Assembly: GCA_013416795.1 (NCBI GenBank)
Contig: RQSC01000024.1
Coordinates: 40,838 to 104,837, forward strand
DNA length: 64,000 bases
Origin: Prasinococcaceae sp. CCMP 1430
Lineage: Eukaryota; Plantae; Prasinodermophyta
Direction: 5' to 3'
The position numbers and the translations under genes were made by a program. Within the stretch, counting starts at the first letter, position 1, and each line of letters begins with the position of its first letter. Below the pieces are notes generated by a model. It was not told the origin of the DNA. It did not search any database and saw only the letters and a list, made by a program, of their open reading frames with translations. Below are positions 35,437-58,950 of the stretch, piece by piece.

Positions 35437-35437
35437 N
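35437..35437. other. Single-N assembly gap
   Basis: One N; the coding frame shifts across it. Confidence 0.95.
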
Positions 35438-36942: not shown

Positions 36943-37013
36943 NNNNNNNNNNNNNNNNNNNNNNNNNNNNNNNNNNNNNNNNNNNNNNNNNNNNNNNNNN
37001 NNNNNNNNNNNNN
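36943..37013. other. Assembly gap (71 N)
   Basis: N run flanked by extreme GC. Confidence 0.99.
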
Positions 37014-37083: not shown

Positions 37084-39012
37084 ATGGACGCCGCCGTGGC
37101 CGGGGCTGCAGAGCGCAGGCGGAACGCCGTATCCACGGCGCTCGATGAGGTGCCCACCAACGGCAATTTCGGCGTGCCCCTCGCTGGGAGCGCCGCAGCG
37201 AAGGGCGCGCCTGCCGCGGCGGCGAAAGGGGCGAGCGGGAACAGGGCGCAGCCGCCTCCGCGGCCGACGGCGGGAGACGGGGGGCGAGCCTTACCAGGCG
37301 CGCAATCCCAGCCCGCGCCGCAGCGAGCAGCGCCAGCGACTGCGCCCCTGGCGCAGTCGCAGCCTGCCCCGGCGCGCCAGGCGTCGCAGGCGGAGCTCGC
37401 TGGAGGGTGGGGGCCAGACATGGCGTTCAATGGGGCGGGCACCTCGGGCGCCGCAGGTGCGCAGCGTGGCGCTGCTGCGCAGCCTGCACCCGACACCGCC
37501 GAGGAGCTCGCTGAACTGGATCGCGAGTGGGCAGAGGTTCGCGTGATCACCGCGTCACAGCAGGAGGCCCTGGACGCGCCGACGACGGGTGACACGTTCG
37601 AGGAGTCCCCGGCCTACGAGTCGCTCCTGCACCTGCCACCTACAGAAACGCAGCGGCAACAAGAAGGCGCTCAGACCGAGCCACCGGAGCAGCAGCAGCA
37701 CAACCGCCACCAGTTGGAGCAAGCTCCTCCCGAGAGCGAGAGGGCGGTCGCGGTGCAGGGGGTGCCGCCGGCGGCTGAAGCTCCCTTGCAGACGCAACCG
37801 GAGGAGGCCAGGCAGCCGGCGCTATTCGAGGCAGAGGACTCGGACGACAACAGCGACTTCAGTGATGCCGTAGAGGAGTTGGCGCGACCGCGGTCCATGT
37901 CGCGCAGCCCAGACTTGCGCGGGCCCGGGCTCGCCCTGCCTGAGGAGACGCCGGTCCGAGAGAGGCAGCGACAGTTCACGCCTGCCTCGCGCGGCTCAGA
38001 TGAGCCGGAAAGGTGGCGGGCGGTGCCATCCCAGGCGAGGGCGAGCGAGGACGGCCGTAGCGACATGTTCCTGACGCAGCGCCCGGCTACGCAGGCGCCC
38101 GCGGGTTCGCAAGCCGACCCGATGGCCCAAGCGACGCAGCAGCCCACGCCCATGCTAATGACACAGGCGCCGCAGGTTCCGCCGGCGACCGATCCTCAGC
38201 AGCCAGCGCAGGAGCCAACGCAAGCCACGCCCGTGCTTGCGACGCAGGCACCTCGCCGCAGCTCGGGCGCGCCGGCCCCAACGAATGAGGCGGCCCTCCC
38301 CGGTGCCGCGGAGAAGGAAGAAGAAGGGGGTGCGCCGCGCCGCGGCTTCGTGGTCGACACGCCGGCGAGCGAGGCGCCGCCGATAAAAGTGACCCTTCCG
38401 GCATCGATCCCGGAGACACAGCAGGATGCCTTCGGCGACGGCGGCGGTGGTGGTGAAGACCAGGGAACCGCGCAGCAGCAGCAGGAGGAGGAGGAGCAGA
38501 GAGAGCAGCAGCAGCAGCCGCAGCAGCAGGATCAGAGCACGGAGAGTGGCGAGCAGGACGCCGAGCTTCGGGAGCGTGTGCACCGGTCCGTCCCCCCCAA
38601 GAAGCGCATCCGCTCGGGCGCCGGTGCGGTGCCCACGCCAACCGGAGCGCAGCCTGCATCAGAAGTGCCATCCGCAGCGGCGCGGGCGCCGGAACGCGGC
38701 GGCGGCGCGGGGCCATCAGATCCGCCGGCCAAGCAGCGAAAGGTGGCAGTGCCGACCACTGCGGTGCCACCATCGGCTACCGCGAAGGGCAAGGCGCAGG
38801 TGCGCGACAAGGAGGCGATGCCCGCCGTGGTCTCGGGGCGGAAGGCGGCGCCGAAGAACAAGAAGAAGGCTTCCGGGAAGTCGCGTGTGCCGGCAAAGGC
38901 CCCCTCTGCGCATGAGCTGCGCATGAAGAGAGCGGCAGACAGGGCGCTCGAGCTCGCGCTGCGCAGGATCCAGGAGCAGGCTGGGATCCCGGCAACGCAG
39001 GAGACCCAGTGA
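37084..39012 (+). CDS. Disordered SQ/TQ-rich hypothetical protein
   Basis: ATG at 37084 just after the gap; low complexity; 11 TQ and 6 SQ dipeptides counted; basic NLS-like KKRIR and KKKASGK. Confidence 0.75.
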   Translation: MDAAVAGAAERRRNAVSTALDEVPTNGNFGVPLAGSAAAKGAPAAAAKGASGNRAQPPPRPTAGDGGRALPGAQSQPAPQRAAPATAPLAQSQPAPARQASQAELAGGWGPDMAFNGAGTSGAAGAQRGAAAQPAPDTAEELAELDREWAEVRVITASQQEALDAPTTGDTFEESPAYESLLHLPPTETQRQQEGAQTEPPEQQQHNRHQLEQAPPESERAVAVQGVPPAAEAPLQTQPEEARQPALFEAEDSDDNSDFSDAVEELARPRSMSRSPDLRGPGLALPEETPVRERQRQFTPASRGSDEPERWRAVPSQARASEDGRSDMFLTQRPATQAPAGSQADPMAQATQQPTPMLMTQAPQVPPATDPQQPAQEPTQATPVLATQAPRRSSGAPAPTNEAALPGAAEKEEEGGAPRRGFVVDTPASEAPPIKVTLPASIPETQQDAFGDGGGGGEDQGTAQQQQEEEEQREQQQQPQQQDQSTESGEQDAELRERVHRSVPPKKRIRSGAGAVPTPTGAQPASEVPSAAARAPERGGGAGPSDPPAKQRKVAVPTTAVPPSATAKGKAQVRDKEAMPAVVSGRKAAPKNKKKASGKSRVPAKAPSAHELRMKRAADRALELALRRIQEQAGIPATQETQ

Positions 39013-39257
39013 GCGTCGAGCGCGCGCGCTACCCTAGCTGCGGCTACATGTTCCAGACCAAAGAGAACGCATTGGCACTCCTTCGCGCACTGTCCAGCGC
39101 GCCTTGACGCGCGCAGAATAGGTGGCGTGTCTGTCCCGCGACTCCTTGCATCGCTCTTGTCGGGCGCAGCAGGAGTGGCGGCGGCGAGCGCAGGCCGTCC
39201 GCGCGAAACACAAAGCCGCGACGAAGTGTGCCATGGCCACCATACACTCCTGTCGCG

Positions 39258-40469
39258 ATGCAGTGCCACACCGCGCGCGCCGTGCGCGCGCTTTTGCCCG
39301 CCGCTGTCCCCATGGCGACCGCGTCGCCAGGCATCGCCGCTCGCCGCGCCTCGACCAGGCCACGCGGTGCGCGCCATGTGCGCGCCGCCGGCGCGCCGCG
39401 CACACGCGTGCGCCCCTGCGCTGCCACTGCCTCACTGCCCGAGGACGAGCTGCATGCGCTGCGAGCGGCCGCCGAGGAAGCTGCAGAGGCCGGGGCGCGT
39501 GTCATCAGGGACGCGCTCGGCGACGGCACCGCAGCCGGTGCGCCGCGTGGTGTCGCGATGCGCGAGGTGCGTGTTCGCAGGAGCACGCGTTGGCCCGCGC
39601 GCCGGTGGTGCCGCAGGCGTCGGCGCAACCGCTGCTTGCTGACGCACGCTTGCGCACTCTACCGCGCCTTGCAGAAGAGCTCTGCCGCCGACATTGTGAC
39701 GGAGGTAGATGGGCGTGCTGAGGAGGCGGTCATCGCCGCGCTGCGCAGCGCGCTCGGTGATTCTTCGGTGGCAATCCTCGGCGAGGAGGGCGGCGTGACG
39801 GGCGACACCGCTGGCTCCGAGCTGCTGTGGTGCGTGGACCCCCTGGACGGCACGACAAACTTTGCGGCGGGCTACCCGTCGTTCGCGGTGAGCGTGGGAT
39901 GCCTCTTCAGAGGAGCGCCCGTTGCCGCGGCGATCGTGGAGTTCACGGGTGGCCCGTTCTGCTGGGCCACGCGTACCTTCAGCGCGGCAAAGGGCATGGG
40001 CGCCACATGCCAAGGCGCGCCGATCGAGTGCTCGCCCAACGACGCGATCGAGAAAAGCCTGCTGGTCACGGGTTTCGGCTACGACCACGGGGCGGCCTGG
40101 GCGGCCAACATGGAGTCTTTCAAGCACTTCACCGACTGCACGCGCGGCGTGCGCAGGCTGGGTGCTGCGGCTGTGGACCTTTGCCATGTCGCCCTGGGCA
40201 TAGTCGACGCCTACTGGGAGTACAATTTGTCGCCGTGGGACGTCGCCGCTGGCGTGCTGATCGCCCAGGAAGCCGGCGCGCTCGTGACGACGCTGGATGG
40301 CAAGCCGTACAGCGTGTTCGACCGGAGCATGATCGCTGTGACGCCGGGGTTGCAGGGGGCGATCCTCGACTCCTATCTCGCCCCGAGGACTCGGCGGCTC
40401 GTCGAAGAGGAGGGTGTCGACCTCGGGAGGTGGAAGATGCCGGAAGGTGTCATTCTCGACCTGCCTTAG
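39258..40469 (+). CDS. IMPL1: Inositol monophosphatase, plastid IMPL1-like; intron 39567..39674
   Basis: DIVTEVD...E, ILGEEGG, WCVDPLDGTTNFAAGYPSFAVSVG, GVRRLGAAAVDLCHVALG, WDVAAG. Transit-peptide-like N-terminus. Confidence 0.92.
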   Translation: MQCHTARAVRALLPAAVPMATASPGIAARRASTRPRGARHVRAAGAPRTRVRPCAATASLPEDELHALRAAAEEAAEAGARVIRDALGDGTAAGAPRGVAMREVRVRRSTRWPARRWCRRRRRNRCLLTHACALYRALQKSSAADIVTEVDGRAEEAVIAALRSALGDSSVAILGEEGGVTGDTAGSELLWCVDPLDGTTNFAAGYPSFAVSVGCLFRGAPVAAAIVEFTGGPFCWATRTFSAAKGMGATCQGAPIECSPNDAIEKSLLVTGFGYDHGAAWAANMESFKHFTDCTRGVRRLGAAAVDLCHVALGIVDAYWEYNLSPWDVAAGVLIAQEAGALVTTLDGKPYSVFDRSMIAVTPGLQGAILDSYLAPRTRRLVEEEGVDLGRWKMPEGVILDLP

Positions 40470-40623
40470 GGCCTAGCTAGAGAGCTCTCTAGCTCTAGCT
40501 AGAGCGCTTTCTACTAGAGCTAGCTGCATGGCTGGACGCAGTCGCAGGCCAGCTTGGGCTGCTGCGTGACTTTGACAAAACCACAAAAAATTATTACTCG
40601 GTGCGGACGCCATCGCCTTCACG

Positions 40624-43086
40624 CTACAGCGCCGTGACGACCGCGCCCCTGACGACCGCGGGCAAAGGGACCGAACCTGACCGCACCCCTTCGATGAAGA
40701 GCGCGTGCAGCTGGTCGGTGAACTCGCCCCAGTTGGCGAGAGGGCCCGTGCCGGTGAGCACAACCTGCACCCACATGCCCATCATCGCCACCATCGCCAG
40801 CCGCGCGTGCTTGATCTCGCTGGTGCGCAGCTCGTGCAAGCGCTCGTCCGACGTGACGGTGAGCCCCAGCGGGTCGAAGAGGCCACCCGGGTAGATGCGC
40901 GTCTCGTAACTTCCGCTGGCGGACGCGCGCAGCATCTCGGCGAACCCTTGCATGAACAGCTGCAAGCCGATGAACGCCTGCATGGACATGGTGTTGTCGC
41001 CCTGCAGCATGGCCAGGTGGTGGATGTTCATGAACACGGCACCCTCCCTGAGCTCCGTGGCGGGCGCCTGCGACCACGACTCCACGTAGCCGAGCGCCTC
41101 GGGCGCCATGCAGCCCACCGCCGCCAGCATCGCCCAGCGCCCGTGGAGGACCTCGACCTCGCGCAGGTACTCGAGGCGCGAGCCGCAGTACGACTTCTCG
41201 TCGTACCCCGGCGGCAGCCACGTGCCCAGGCCGCTGCCGTCCGCGGCGCGCCTGTCCTCGCGCGTGAAGCCCACCGGGTCGAAGCCCACGTCGCCCGGCA
41301 GGCTCCCGTCGAGCTCCACGGGAGCGTTGAGCATCGGCAACCACCCCGCGCGGCGGTCGGAGGCCATGCCGCCGCGCCCAGCGGTGAGGCCCGCCGCGCG
41401 CAGCAGCGGCCACATGTACTGCTCGGCCACGCGCACGCCCGCGCCCTCGTGGCCCAGGTGCGCGATCAGCCTGAAGCGAATGTCGTTGCTCGCGACGGCG
41501 AACACTCGCAGCGCGAACATCAGCAGCTCGGGGCCCGACAGCCGGTGGCTGAGGAAGCTCTGCCACCACACGTTGGGCAGCCGGAAGAACGTGCGGAAGA
41601 AGGCGAGGAGCGTGGGCTGGTCGAAGGTGAGCATCATCCGCATCCCGAACTCGTAGAAGCCCTGCTGCCGCCGCCGGTCGTCGTCCCACAGCTGGTCCCA
41701 CGCGAGGCGCGCCGCCTCCTCGGCGGGCACCTGCGAGTCGGAGGCGAGCCCGTCGGCAATGGCGCGCGCCACGTGGGGGGCGCGCGTGAGCATGTTGGCG
41801 ATGTGGTAGCCGCTCACGGGGTGCACCATGCCGGCGGCCGCGCCGAAGGCCACCGAGCGCTGCGGCGCCACGGGCACCGTGCCGCCCAGCGGGATCCAGC
41901 TGGCCTCCTCCTCCAGCACCGCCTCCACGTGCGCGTCCTCGTCGAGGCCCATGCGCTGCAGCCGGCGCGTCAGGCGCGCCTTGAGCTCGTCGAAGGGCAC
42001 CGCGTGGTCGGTGGGCGCCACGAGGCACGTCTCCTGCAGGAAGACCGTGTCTTCGTCGACGGGGAAGGCGTAGAGGATGCTCGGCCAGTGCGAGTGCGAC
42101 GCGCAGTCCTCGCCGTGCGCGCCCGCCAGCGCCTCCTCGCGCTCGGTGTCCTGATGGCGGAAGTCCATGAAGAGGGCCGTGTCCATGGGCCACGGGTGGT
42201 TCTTCCAGGTGACCTCGTAGCCGTAGGCGGTCTGCATGGTGGGGCGCGGGCCGTCCTCGTAGGCGAGGAGCTCGCGGTTGTGGCCGAGCGCCAGCACGGG
42301 CACCTTGGCACGCAGCGGCGTCTCGCGGCCGCGCACGCGCAGCTCGCTGTGCTGGCGCTCGTGCTCGATGCCATCGACGAGGGCGTCGAGGTACTGCACG
42401 CCGCCGGCGCGCGCGGCGGCCAGCAGCTTGGCGCGCAGCTCGCGGCGGCCCAAGCGCACGTAGCGGCGGCCCAGGTCGAGCTGCTCGCTCTCGGAAAGCC
42501 ACACCTCCATCTTGTCGTAGCGCTGGACCACGGCGTCGCTGAGGTCCAGCGGGATCTCGGCGAGTTCGTCCTCGAAGATGCCGTAGTTGTTCACGAAGCA
42601 CGACTCGGGGCCCAGGAGCAGCACGCTCAGGCCGGTGCCGGCGAGCTCGGCGGCCATGGCGATGCCGGCCGGGCCGGTGCCGACCACCACGGCGTCGTAG
42701 TCATCGCGTCCGTCGGCCGGCTCTAGTTGGCTCGACAGCGGCGGCTGCTCCGTGTCCTCCTTGCCCTCCTGGAACGACACCCACTTGCGCGAGCTCGAAT
42801 CGAGCTCGCGCTCGAGGCGCTCCTCCGTGCGCTCGGCCCACACGGCGCACCGCGCGGGCGCGCGGGCCGAGCGCGCGCGCGCTGCNNNNNNNNNNNNNNN
42901 NNNNNNNNNNNNNNNNNNNNNNNNNNNNNNNNNNNNNNNNNNNNNNNNNNNNNCGCGCCGCCGCGCGGATCGCGCGCGCGGCCCGGCCGCGCCGCGCGGG
43001 TTCCGTTCCATTTGGGGTTCACCCCAGATTCGCGCGCATCCGCGCGGCGCCGACAACGTCTCTTTGGCCTCAACAACGGATTCCAT
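40624..43086 (-). CDS. LCYE: Lycopene epsilon-cyclase fused in frame to a C-terminal light-harvesting complex (LHC) domain; N-terminus crosses an N-gap
   Basis: Cyclase motifs VVVGTGPAG, LLGPESCFVNNYG, MQTAYGYEV, FLQETCLV, WIPLGGTVP, GMVHPVSGY. With no stop, LHC motifs follow: LPGDVGFDPVG, REVEVLHGRWAML, YPGGLFDPLG, EIKHARLAM, TGTGPLAN. Confidence 0.93.
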   Translation of the reverse strand: MESVVEAKETLSAPRGCARIWGEPQMERNPRGAAGPRARSARRRXXXXXXXXXXXXXXXXXXXXXXXAARARSARAPARCAVWAERTEERLERELDSSSRKWVSFQEGKEDTEQPPLSSQLEPADGRDDYDAVVVGTGPAGIAMAAELAGTGLSVLLLGPESCFVNNYGIFEDELAEIPLDLSDAVVQRYDKMEVWLSESEQLDLGRRYVRLGRRELRAKLLAAARAGGVQYLDALVDGIEHERQHSELRVRGRETPLRAKVPVLALGHNRELLAYEDGPRPTMQTAYGYEVTWKNHPWPMDTALFMDFRHQDTEREEALAGAHGEDCASHSHWPSILYAFPVDEDTVFLQETCLVAPTDHAVPFDELKARLTRRLQRMGLDEDAHVEAVLEEEASWIPLGGTVPVAPQRSVAFGAAAGMVHPVSGYHIANMLTRAPHVARAIADGLASDSQVPAEEAARLAWDQLWDDDRRRQQGFYEFGMRMMLTFDQPTLLAFFRTFFRLPNVWWQSFLSHRLSGPELLMFALRVFAVASNDIRFRLIAHLGHEGAGVRVAEQYMWPLLRAAGLTAGRGGMASDRRAGWLPMLNAPVELDGSLPGDVGFDPVGFTREDRRAADGSGLGTWLPPGYDEKSYCGSRLEYLREVEVLHGRWAMLAAVGCMAPEALGYVESWSQAPATELREGAVFMNIHHLAMLQGDNTMSMQAFIGLQLFMQGFAEMLRASASGSYETRIYPGGLFDPLGLTVTSDERLHELRTSEIKHARLAMVAMMGMWVQVVLTGTGPLANWGEFTDQLHALFIEGVRSGSVPLPAVVRGAVVTAL
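42886..42953. other. Assembly gap (68 N)
   Basis: N run inside the 5' part of LCYE-LHC. Confidence 0.99.
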
Positions 43087-43380
43087 TTGATTGGGTTCGA
43101 TTGGGTTTTGATGTGGATTCCGCTCTTATCCGCTGCGGAGGGCCGGATTGCGCCCGCACCCAAAGATCTCCCAGGTGCAGGCCCATGCGCCACATCGGAG
43201 CGCACGAAAGGGTCTGCTAAAAATGGATATGGATGTGTAAATAAATATGGAAAGGGGCGGATGTGCGCGGGGAGGGTTTGGGTTTATCGGTCCAAACCTC
43301 AAACGGGACGCGGGCTCGGTTTTGGCGCCGCGCGCGGGCGCGTGTCCCGCGCGCGCCCGCGGCGCCGCCGCCCCGGCAGC

Positions 43381-43433
43381 CCCTGTAAACCCCTTTAACC
43401 CCTTTTGACCCCTTTCACCCCAACCCAAACCCT
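43381..43433. repeat. Degenerate telomere-like (A)ACCCC(T)n tandem tract
   Basis: ccctgtaaacccctttaaccccttttgacccctttcaccccaacccaaaccct. Confidence 0.55.
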
Positions 43434-43712
43434 CGGCCGCGACTCCGGAGTCCTCCGGAGTCCTCCGGGGGCTGCCAGCCAGTCTCTCTCTGTCTGTTGG
43501 TGGGTGGGTGGAAGGGTGGGTGGGTGGGCGTCTGACTGACTCTGAGTGTGTGTGTGATTGTGACTCTGTCTGGCTGGTGTGTGTGCCAAGTGCGCTCCCC
43601 AGCCAGCCTCTGCTCCTGCTCCAGCTCGCGTGCCGGGCCGGGCCAGCAGCGCCGGCGCGCTGCCTGGCCGCGGCCGCGACTCCGGAGTCCTCCGGACTGC
43701 CAGTCTCTCTGT
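43434..43712. repeat. Two copies of a ~50-bp element with palindromic core GACTCCGGAGTC (starting at about 43434 and 43671)
   Basis: cggccgcgactccggagtcctccgga occurs twice, each copy followed by ctgccag...tctctct. Confidence 0.85.
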
Positions 43713-43775
43713 CTCCGTCTCTGTCTCTGTCTCTGTCTCTGTCTCCGTCTCCGTCTCTGTCTCCGTCTCTGTCTG
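43703..43775. repeat. Hexamer microsatellite (TCTCTG/TCTCCG)n, about 12 units
   Basis: tctctctgtctccgtctctgtctctgtctctgtctctgtctccgtctccgtctctgtctccgtctctgtct. Confidence 0.9.
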
Positions 43776-44255
43776 TGTGGCCCGTCGCGGCGGCGGCTCT
43801 CGGCCTCTCGATCCGATCCCGCGCGGGCGCCGCGCCGCTGTGCGCTCCGCCGCCCGCGCGCGCGCGCGCGCGCGCGCGCGCCCCGGATTCGATCCAAAAT
43901 TGCGGGCCCGCGCCCGAAGCGCGCGCGCCATCCCCATCCGCCCTCCAACCAGGCAGGCCGCCCTTCCAGACGCAGGCCATCGTTTTACGATGGGTCGAAA
44001 TTGGGCACACCGCGCGTATTGAATGTACCTTTCGTGTATGTTTTACGGATATGCGTCCAAAATCGACGCGAACTCCTCTCCGCGCGGTGCGCGCAAAAAT
44101 CGCGCGTCCGTGCGGCGGGCGCCGGGGACGAAACCTCAACCTCCGCGCGCGCTCCGCGCGCGCGGGCGCACGTCGCAGAAGGTGTAAATCAGACCCTATT
44201 GAGGGTGTGACCGTAAAGGCGCGCCCGCGGCGGCGCGGCGGCGCGCCACGCGGCG

Positions 44256-44256
44256 N
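44256..44256. other. Single-N assembly gap
   Basis: One N at the 5' end of the LCYB reading frame. Confidence 0.95.
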
Positions 44257-44258
44257 GC

Positions 44259-46019
44259 CGCTGCAGCGCCACGCGGCTGCTGTCCGCTGGGCCTGCGGCA
44301 AAGGAGAGAGAGGGAGGCGATCGCGGCGCGTCAGCAGTTGACGCGCGAGAGGAGCGACGGACGAGAGAGGGGGCGGCGGCGGCGGCGGCGAACGGCGAGA
44401 CGGTGCTCGTGGCGGACGGAGCCGTCGCGCCCGCGGCGATGCCCGCTGGCGCCGCGGCGGCGGTGAGTGTCGGCGAGCGCACGCGCACGGGGGATGGCGC
44501 CGGGGCCAGCGCGAGGGAGAGCGCGCTGGGCGCGCTGCCGGCGTGGGACCCGTCGCTGGGCACGCTGGACCTGGTGGTGGTGGGCATGGGCCCCGCGGGC
44601 CTGAGCGCGGCCGAGGAGGCCTCGCGCCGGGGGATGCGCGTCGTGGTCGTGGAGCCGCGGCCCAACGCAGCGTGGCCCAACAACTACGGCGTGTGGATCG
44701 ACGAGTTCGAGGCGATGGGCCTCGAGGACTGCATCGACACGGAGTGGCAGCGCGCCAAGGTGCAGTTCACCGAGAAGGAGGAGGCGTCGGTGCTCGACCG
44801 CAAGTACGGGCGCGTGAACCGCCGCCGCCTCAAGGATCGCCTGCTCAAGGGCTGCGTGGCGAACGGCGTCGTCTTCCACGCGGCGCGCGCGGTCGGCGTG
44901 ACGCACGCCGAGCGGTGGCGCTCCGCGGTGAAGTGCTCGGACGGCGCCGAGGTGCTCGGGGCGGCGGTGCTCGACGGGACGGGGCACGCGCGCTCGCTGG
45001 TGGAGTTCGAGGGCGAGTTCGACCCGGGGTACCAGGGCGCGTACGGCATCATGATTGAGGTCGAGAGCCACCCCTTCGAGCTGGACACCATGTTCTTCAT
45101 GGACTGGCGCGACGACCACCTGGCCGGCGACGTGAGCATGCGCGAGCGCAACGCCGCGCTGCCCACGTTCCTGTACACCATGCCGTTCTCGCCCACGCGC
45201 ATCTTCGTGGAGGAGACCAGCCTGGTGGCGCGGCCGGCGGTGCCCTTCCCCGAGCTCAAGGCGCGCCTCGAGAAGCGGCTGGCGGGCCTGGGCGTGGTGG
45301 TGAAGGAGGTGCTCGAGGAGGAGTACTGCCTCATCCCCATGGGCGGCGTGCTGCCGAGGATGCCGCAGCGCGTGCTCGGTTTGGGCGGCACGGGCGGCAT
45401 GGTGCACCCGGCCACGGGCTTCATGATCGCGCGCACCCTGGGCGCGGCGCCGCTGCTGATCGACGCGCTCGAGACGGAGCTCACCGCCGCGCGGCGCCAG
45501 GCGGCCTCGGCGCTCCCCACCGGCACGCCGCGGGAGGACGTGCTGGCGATGGTGGACATGGACGAGGTCAGCGCGCGCGTGTGGTCCCAGACGTGGCCTG
45601 ACTGGCGTTTGCAGCAGAGGGAATTTTTCAACACAGGCATGGACATCCTGCTCAGGCTGGGGCTGGACGCCACGCGGTCGTTCTTCGCGGCGTTCTTCAA
45701 GACCAGCACGTATAACTGGCAGGGGTTCCTCTCGTATCGGCTCACGCTGGTCGAGCTCTTTTCGTTCGGGCTGGAATTCTTCGCGGTGGGCGACTGGCGC
45801 ATGCGCAAGTTCACCACGGTCAACGCGCTGCCCGGGGTGTTCACGCTCTTTCAGAAGATCGCGACGGGTGGCTTTTCGCGGCAGGTGGGCATCACGGAGG
45901 GGGAGGAGGGCGTGCGCTGGCGCGGGAGCGCCAAGGGCGACTTCGACGAGGAGATGAAGAAGGCGCTCGAGACGCGCGAGGAGCAGCTGCCCAAGGACGC
46001 GGTGCCGCCCGTGCGGTGA
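44259..46019 (+). CDS. LCYB: Lycopene beta-cyclase (5' end likely lies in the N gap)
   Basis: LPAWDPS, DLVVVGMGPAG, WPNNYGVWIDEFEAM, YGRVNRRRLK, DPGYQGAYGI, FMDWRDDHL, PTFLYTMPFS, FVEETSLVARP, GMVHPATGF. Frame is open back to the N (RCSATRLL..., transit-peptide-like). Confidence 0.95.
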   Translation, partial: RCSATRLLSAGPAAKEREGGDRGASAVDAREERRTREGAAAAAANGETVLVADGAVAPAAMPAGAAAAVSVGERTRTGDGAGASARESALGALPAWDPSLGTLDLVVVGMGPAGLSAAEEASRRGMRVVVVEPRPNAAWPNNYGVWIDEFEAMGLEDCIDTEWQRAKVQFTEKEEASVLDRKYGRVNRRRLKDRLLKGCVANGVVFHAARAVGVTHAERWRSAVKCSDGAEVLGAAVLDGTGHARSLVEFEGEFDPGYQGAYGIMIEVESHPFELDTMFFMDWRDDHLAGDVSMRERNAALPTFLYTMPFSPTRIFVEETSLVARPAVPFPELKARLEKRLAGLGVVVKEVLEEEYCLIPMGGVLPRMPQRVLGLGGTGGMVHPATGFMIARTLGAAPLLIDALETELTAARRQAASALPTGTPREDVLAMVDMDEVSARVWSQTWPDWRLQQREFFNTGMDILLRLGLDATRSFFAAFFKTSTYNWQGFLSYRLTLVELFSFGLEFFAVGDWRMRKFTTVNALPGVFTLFQKIATGGFSRQVGITEGEEGVRWRGSAKGDFDEEMKKALETREEQLPKDAVPPVR

Positions 46020-58905: not shown

Positions 58906-58950
58906 NNNNNNNNNNNNNNNNNNNNNNNNNNNNNNNNNNNNNNNNNNNNN
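58906..58950. other. Assembly gap (45 N)
   Basis: N run just upstream of the VPS13 start. Confidence 0.99.

Follow-up and report, generated by a model that had tools for sequence, protein, structure and literature searches.

The 64,000-nt stretch of DNA analyzed here, referred to as the window (contig RQSC01000024.1 of GenBank assembly GCA_013416795.1, Prasinococcaceae sp. CCMP 1430, positions 40,838 to 104,837 of the forward strand), carries in its assembled form two predicted lycopene cyclase genes in head-to-head orientation: on the minus strand a lycopene epsilon-cyclase (LCYE) that continues into a C-terminal three-helix light-harvesting complex (LHC) domain, and on the plus strand a lycopene beta-cyclase (LCYB) without such an extension. 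On balance, we lean toward the interpretation that this pair is real, that its LCYE belongs to the subfamily of the LCYB-LCYE-LHC triple fusions and acquired an LHC domain of its own, and that the two genes have retained an ancient linkage. Where they overlap, the minus-strand protein and the protein PRCOL_00002058-RA of the early-branching green alga Prasinoderma coloniale (EukProt EP00793; P0020) are nearly identical, and the window is therefore taken as P. coloniale nuclear DNA.

LCYB alone converts lycopene to beta-carotene, and LCYB together with LCYE yields alpha-carotene, the precursor of lutein-type antenna xanthophylls. The lycopene cyclase step determines what share of the carotenoids enters the beta branch and what share the alpha branch, with its lutein and prasinoxanthin-type antenna pigments. 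The main interest of the locus is that a member of the third green phylum carries a fusion-type epsilon-cyclase with a different type of LHC domain, located beside LCYB and unfused to it. No description of an LCYE with an LHC domain, of Prasinoderma cyclases or of a head-to-head cyclase pair was found in the searchable literature, and the pair is apparently undescribed. The P. coloniale genome paper (PMC7455551) does not mention carotenoids or cyclases, and the gene is not listed in those of its supplements that were searched.

Identity of the two cyclases

A tblastn search of the 64 kb with cyclase and LHC queries returned just two cyclase segments and one LHC segment. Both genes lie where the original prediction had placed them, LCYE-LHC on the minus strand and LCYB on the plus strand, and their identity is borne out by the Pfam domains (Table 1) and by the clades in which they fall, each supported at 100/99. 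The phylogeny was obtained by maximum likelihood from 69 cyclase domains under LG+C20, with cyanobacterial CrtL as the outgroup; two-domain proteins were split with a hidden Markov model built for this analysis.

The minus-strand cyclase scores 294 bits against TIGR01790, for which the cut-off is 209. The domain carries the N-terminal FAD-binding Rossmann motif DAVVVGTGPAG and shows ETCL where LCYB has ETSL. In the tree it is located in the LCYE clade (24 rows), alongside the named LCYE proteins of Elaeis, Riccia and Chloropicon. Judged by these sequence features, the gene is a lycopene epsilon-cyclase of the plant type (CrtL-e). The Gln residue of its FLQETCL motif was considered as a catalytic defect and rejected, since it is also present in several fused E domains, in the Chloropicon LCYE and in a Closterium E-clade protein.

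The best named matches of the plus-strand protein are without exception lycopene beta-cyclases (50-57% identity). This protein has the ETSLVARP motif and C-terminal motifs of the canonical type, and its domain falls into the LCYB clade. This gene is assigned as a free-standing lycopene beta-cyclase. The two proteins are only about 34% identical to each other and are therefore old paralogues, as had been proposed, and not the result of a recent duplication. The divergent orientation expected for them is found in the assembly, with the spacing, put at about 1.2-1.4 kb beforehand, measuring 1.25-1.55 kb according to the position chosen for the LCYE-LHC start.

The cyclase-LHC fusion

The minus-strand frame is open from its stop codon at 40624 to a run of unread bases (N-run) at 42886, and it is continuous over the junction between the cyclase and the LHC domain. 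The selective constraint on this junction could be assessed with the closest relative, which is represented by short marine metagenome contigs at 74-78% identity (L002-L010, L019-L021). In the comparison with L002, 41 of the 50 residues of the linker are identical, and the nucleotide differences are distributed as 7/2/14 over codon positions 1/2/3. The same third-position bias is observed for the cyclase part (77/61/155) and for the LHC part (49/37/83). By this measure, the junction is under in-frame purifying selection. Furthermore, the sequence ahead of the LHC domain leaves no space for an additional transit peptide. The same UniRef cluster includes P0019 (247 aa), which begins at the Met within the linker and comprises nothing but the LHC part; it is most likely a truncated call, and some annotations may count the fused domain as a free LHC protein.

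The LHC domain is complete, with the PF00504 match spanning profile positions 2-160 of 162, and contains the helix 1 and helix 3 motifs EVLHGRWAM and SEIKHARLAM, of the Glu-x-x-His/Asn-x-Arg type. Among the 643 LHC chains of the PDB that match it, those of CP29 score highest of the single-domain proteins, with 118, 117, 116 and 115 bits; the window domain aligns colinearly with CP29, including a long insert that separates the GFDPxGF motif from helix 1. In the relative, too, the LHC domain is closest to CP29 (113 bits). A different picture is obtained for the triple fusions: the fused LHC domains of Mamiellales match CP26 best (124-113 bits) and that of Cymbomonas matches LHCII and CP26 best (99-97 bits), with CP29 absent from the top 60 in both cases. 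In direct phmmer comparisons the fused LHC domains score 125-128 bits among themselves and 58-69 bits against that of the window, and the BLASTP alignment of the latter with a fused domain gives 28% identity, with a gap of 25 residues where the CP29-type insert lies.

The LHC domains of the window and of the triple fusions thus match each other worse than they match ordinary LHC proteins, which suggests separate captures. The distribution of the tail points in the same direction. Some members of the E subclade lack an LHC domain, among them the stand-alone LCYE of L102, which ends just before an opposite-strand gene, the Amorphochlora cyclase, and the B-E protein P0185, which has only an 82-residue tail; when mapped on the tree, two gains of the LHC domain require fewer steps than one gain followed by two losses. 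From the scores and the domain architecture, separate capture of the two kinds of tail appears quite likely. The LHC domain of the window is probably not orthologous to the fused CP26/LHCII-like domain, and the dissimilarity of the two disfavors, for the LHC part, a simple precursor or fission relation.

Relation to the triple fusion

Within the LCYE clade, the window LCYE and its 74%-identical relative are together sister, at 100/99, to all other members of a 16-row subclade. This fusion-type subclade comprises the second domains of Mamiellales-type B-E(-LHC) contigs, those of Cymbomonas tetramitiformis KAK3288595.1 (1296 aa) and of a 1359-aa Tara protein, an LHC-less B-E transcript from MMETSP that groups with Amorphochlora, and a stand-alone form without LHC (P0012/P0060). 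The motifs DxDTVF, ETCL, EEEASWIPLGG and FLSHRL are common to the window and to the fused E domains. On the basis of tree and motifs, the E domain of the window is assigned to the fusion-type subfamily.

All other LHC-bearing cyclases that were retrieved (L011-L018) are immediately preceded, on the same strand, by an LCYB domain; adjacency of B and E therefore recurs in the lineages with this E subfamily. L011 and L012-L018 were considered as tandem but separate genes, and this was rejected: the first open reading frame (ORF) of L011 extends into the E domain, as far as its FAD motif, before the frame breaks, and L011-L018 are therefore triple fusions split by gene callers at an intron or frameshift. 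L011 and L012 also share a conserved downstream PIH1 neighbor. A further candidate for a linked B/E pair, Mesostigma viride Mv16334 (P0135) and Mv16339 (P0202), was rejected because both proteins are LCYB and sisters at 100/100; their identifiers are five gene models apart, as in a local LCYB duplication.

The triple fusion had been described beforehand as a feature of Mamiellales. It is present there and is not confined to that order: the Cymbomonas tetramitiformis protein (P0184) combines LCYB, LCYE and C-terminal LHC domains, which places the triple fusion in Pyramimonadophyceae as well. P0185, a transcript product of 1214 aa, is a B-E fusion ending in the short LHC-less tail already mentioned, and its E domain groups at 100/100 with the E-type cyclase of Amorphochlora amoebiformis (P0014; L103). 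This suggests that hosts with chlorarachniophyte-type plastids inherited fusion-type cyclases without the LHC part.

The head-to-head layout itself was not encountered elsewhere. When metagenomes of the Joint Genome Institute (JGI) were scanned with the LCYB protein, 80 LCYB loci were obtained, about 45 of them same-strand B-E-LHC fusions and about 35 solitary LCYB genes. None of the 80 is arranged head to head, and no second cyclase is present near the solitary genes within flanks of up to 8 kb. The same scan contained no Prasinoderma-like contig, the best match being 53% identical. No second cyclase was found within reach of the Prasinococcus-type LCYB (L104), the stand-alone LCYE (L102) or the Amorphochlora gene (L103).

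Possible homology of the adjacency

Several observations weigh against a real pair with retained linkage. In the 69-row tree, the window LCYB is located outside the clade of fused B domains and among the canonical LCYBs (99/92), and motif comparison did not find the fused-B motifs RTFMCFGMETLM and GGFLSWR in it; if this placement is right, the adjacency is not homologous to the fusion. The separate capture of the LHC tail is deduced from score comparisons and domain architecture rather than from an LHC tree. As regards the pair itself, the two genes are physically connected solely through the N-run at 42886-42953, across which no independent contig was found; a Tara contig (L001), 98.9% identical to window positions 37252-42766, ends about 120 nt short of it. 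The contigs of the relative, which extend 661 nt beyond the called start of E-LHC and 1203 nt beyond that of LCYB in the upstream direction, do not overlap, which says little with gene calls that are truncated at the N-terminus.

The placement of LCYB was examined further. The fused B domains form a strong clade together with a 547-aa cyclase of Prasinococcus capsulatus (100/99 to 100/100), and in a tree restricted to B domains the window LCYB stays outside this clade at just 92/73. When it was forced into the clade, the approximately unbiased (AU) test did not reject the constrained tree for the 69-row data set (p = 0.081); for the B-only data set, the constrained tree was 2 log-likelihood units better than the tree of the free search (p = 0.547). 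The Prasinococcus cyclase that groups with the fused B domains is a stand-alone protein of another prasinodermophyte (P0194/P0351; L104), beside which the Prasinoderma LCYB has no firm place; LCYB may have two ancient lineages, or the pattern may be an artefact of rates. The locus had been regarded in the original prediction as a split counterpart of the triple fusion. This description holds for the E domain and probably fails for the LHC domain, and for the B domain it is neither confirmed by the tree nor rejected by the AU tests.

The most serious alternative is that the adjacency is real but secondary and neutral, having arisen by a rearrangement in the Prasinoderma lineage, without homology to the linkage in the fusions and without shared regulation. 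The position of LCYB among the canonical enzymes, at a distance from both the fused B domains and the cyclase of Prasinococcus, and its lack of the fused-B motifs are both in line with it, as are the different types of the LHC domains, the two separate AT-rich islands of the spacer, in which no sequence is conserved with the relative, and the complete lack of head-to-head arrangements in the metagenomic survey. Against this stand the firm position of the E domain in the fusion subfamily, the AU tests, which leave a grouping of LCYB with the fused-B clade unrejected, and the low chance of such a neighborhood: for a named gene pair among the 7,139 genes reported for P. coloniale (PMC7455551) it amounts to about 3e-4, a figure computed after the fact. 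Taken together, a neutral secondary adjacency appears rather unlikely.

The spacer and possible co-regulation

The spacer is rich in microsatellites, including (TCTCTG)12 at 43706-43778 and (CG)n runs. Five ORFs in it have no Pfam match, and no Rfam match was found in it. Two AT-rich islands are located about 750 nt apart, one near each gene, and from their composition they can be considered candidate core promoters. Midway between them, a 29-nt direct repeat is present in two copies, each followed by a CT/GT microsatellite. It contains a perfect 12-nt palindrome, GACTCCGGAGTC, which occurs twice in the 64 kb, both times in the spacer, against 0.01 occurrences expected by chance; in the 74-78% identical relative, the upstream sequences of both genes lack it. 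The repeat could be a cis-element or a mere local duplication.

This architecture bears on the proposal that the two genes form a co-regulated unit, with a shared bidirectional promoter that sets the ratio of alpha- to beta-carotene. The divergent orientation with no gene in between would suit such a unit, as would the action of both products on one substrate and the confinement of the duplicated, palindrome-bearing element to the middle of the spacer. However, in a genome where one gene occurs about every 3.5 kb, a spacer of 1.25-1.55 kb cannot be called short; the AT-rich islands are far apart, the palindrome is not shared with the relative, and tuning of the alpha/beta ratio would call for independent control of LCYE and LCYB instead of strict co-expression. 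In its composition, the spacer looks like two separate promoters and not like one shared core. A shared regulatory element in the spacer is possible; a single bidirectional promoter is unlikely.

Continuity of the assembly

The N-run at 42886-42953 sits within the 5' end of LCYE-LHC and not between two complete genes. The frame to its left is still coding and homologous to the upstream ORF of the relative, as seen when ...APARCAVWAERTEERLERE of the window is set against ...AKAGATAWKERTETRLERE of the relative. The GC content of the window is about 70%, and that of the flanks of the run is 87% and 81%, with (CG)n runs. All three N-runs of the window (45-71 nt) are embedded in such (CG)n-rich sequence of 81-91% GC, the other two being located at 36943-37013 and 58906-58950 in low-complexity surroundings of 84-91% GC; single Ns occur at 35437 and 44256. 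This pattern suggests a systematic dropout of the assembly at extreme GC. The published assembly consists of NextDenovo contigs from PacBio reads, polished with Arrow and, with short reads, NextPolish, and no scaffolding step is described (PMC7455551). The GC pattern and the way the assembly was made both favor a local read dropout over a scaffold join, and the physical continuity of the pair across the run is likely.

An assembly artefact, in which the two sides of the run were misjoined or misoriented and the genes would be non-adjacent or in tandem, draws on the interruption of the very stretch that joins them, on the lack of a crossing contig and on the implausible 9-codon exon with which the public gene model spans the run, but it is improbable given that the run is short and resembles the other two, that the assembly is made of polished long-read contigs, and that the short-read metagenome contig L001 breaks near the same place, as expected for extreme GC. 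The first 31 bases of this contig (L001:1-31) have no match to the window and supply an ATG that is absent from it; they represent either strain variation or a chimeric contig end beside the run.

Features of the locus

The coordinates of all features are collected in Table 1.

Table 1. Features of the LCYE-LHC/LCYB locus, in window coordinates
Feature	Positions	Strand	Remarks
LCYE-LHC coding sequence, readable part	40624..42885	-	continuous ORF; stop codon 40624-40626; Lycopene_cycl and Chloroa_b-bind domains
C-terminal three-helix LHC domain, CP29-like	40765..41322	-	Pfam PF00504 Chloroa_b-bind, 5e-39
Epsilon-cyclase domain, assigned to the fusion-type LCYE subclade	41476..42696	-	Pfam Lycopene_cycl, 3e-82
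Unread N-run, 68 nt (length estimated)	42886..42953		within LCYE-LHC 5' end
Intergenic spacer	42954..44438		no other gene detected
AT-rich island, GC 0.42-0.45, adjoining LCYE-LHC 5' end	43070..43280		fine-scale composition profile
9-codon first exon MGLHLGDLW of the public gene model	43160..43186	-	N-terminus of P0020, which then joins at RTEERLE
29-nt direct repeat, copy 1, containing the 12-nt palindrome	43431..43459		
29-nt direct repeat, copy 2, with the palindrome	43668..43696		97% identical to copy 1
AT-rich island, GC 0.47-0.53, about 350-450 nt upstream of the LCYB ATG	43970..44090		fine-scale composition profile
LCYB coding sequence, single domain, no LHC	44439..46019	+	from first ATG; ORF opens at GTG 44403
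LCYB cyclase domain	44568..45806	+	Pfam Lycopene_cycl, 3e-110

The start of LCYE-LHC depends on the N-run. The ORF extends to an ATG at 43086 in frame only if the run, whose length is estimated, is exactly 68 nt, and this ATG is no more than a candidate start. The public gene model P0020 skips the run by means of the 9-codon exon, which is probably a prediction artefact. In the relative (L002:1-400, L020:1-700), a cyclase-homologous frame continues without a stop for about 85 codons ahead of the called start and contains no ATG, and the sole nearby ATG upstream of LCYE-LHC lies in a different frame. The transit-peptide region of the relative may thus contain a small intron or a frameshift.

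The genes flanking the pair are unrelated to carotenoids: an inositol monophosphatase, a gene with a weak, sub-threshold GRAM-domain match and one with a weak VPS13-like match. The locus is therefore a gene pair and not part of a wider cluster.

Proposed function and evolutionary scenario

In the reading that we favor, the LHC tail would insert the epsilon-cyclase into the thylakoid membrane and would probably bind pigment, thereby tying the output of epsilon-rings to antenna assembly. A similar role has reportedly been suggested for the LHC domain by truncation experiments on the Ostreococcus fusion. The CP29-like tail and the CP26/LHCII-like tail of the triple fusions would probably stem from independent captures. 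For the adjacency, the simplest explanation would be a retained linkage of the ancient B/E paralogues with one gene inverted, the same linkage having become the head-to-tail fusion in other prasinophytes. The divergent layout would permit co-regulation without showing it.

A more far-reaching version can be put forward tentatively, namely that the B/E neighborhood goes back to a tandem duplication from which LCYE arose at the base of the green plants, and that it was preserved in Prasinodermophyta, where one gene was inverted, and turned into a single protein in Mamiellophyceae and Pyramimonadophyceae. The epsilon-cyclase of this lineage would have captured an LHC domain independently at least twice, a CP29-like one in the window and a CP26/LHCII-like one in the fusions. 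If true, the repeated LHC capture would mean that the tethering of epsilon-ring synthesis to the antenna has been under strong selection.

Comparison with known systems

To our knowledge, the triple fusion of Ostreococcus has until now been the only natural physical coupling of both cyclases with an LHC module. The best point of reference is OluLCY, the LCYB-LCYE-LHC triple fusion of the Mamiellales species Ostreococcus lucimarinus, as described in PMC5408262 (citing Blatt et al. 2015, Plant J 82:582). Both systems have epsilon-cyclases of the same subfamily, with sister position in the tree and common motifs, carry a C-terminal three-helix LHC domain and have both cyclases at one locus. In contrast to the single frame of OluLCY, the window has two genes on opposite strands with a free-standing LCYB, and its LHC domain resembles CP29, including the long insert ahead of helix 1, whereas the fused one is CP26/LHCII-like, in keeping with their low mutual scores.

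With the LCYB and LCYE of land plants and core chlorophytes, the locus shares the organization as two single-function cyclases encoded by separate genes. In those organisms the genes are unlinked, whereas the pair of the window are immediate neighbors; moreover, the window LCYE belongs to another LCYE subclade and carries an LHC tail. As regards the tail itself, the best-matching solved LHC is CP29 (Lhcb4), one of the minor monomeric antenna proteins of photosystem II, with which it aligns colinearly for about 220 residues. The two have in common the N-terminal WLP...GDxGFDP sequence, the insert before helix 1 and the Glu/His/Arg motifs of helices 1 and 3. Unlike CP29, the LHC domain of the window is the C-terminal domain of an enzyme, with no transit peptide of its own, and not a free antenna subunit.

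Plastid ferrochelatase II, which bears a C-terminal LHC (CAB) motif consisting of a single helix, provides a further parallel as an enzyme of a pigment pathway with an LHC-family membrane segment at its C-terminus. In LCYE-LHC, a full three-helix domain takes the place of the single helix, and the pathway is a different one. Ferrochelatase forms one clade of the LHC superfamily in the P. coloniale genome paper (PMC7455551). The locus of the window suggests that the coupling of enzymes to LHC domains arose more than once. Together with the triple fusions, the LCYE-LHC of the window offers a natural comparison for the role of the LHC tail, and the origin of the fusion becomes testable by synteny and LHC phylogeny in early green lineages. 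With and without its tail, LCYE-LHC would furthermore be a ready-made tool for tuning the ratio of alpha- to beta-carotene.

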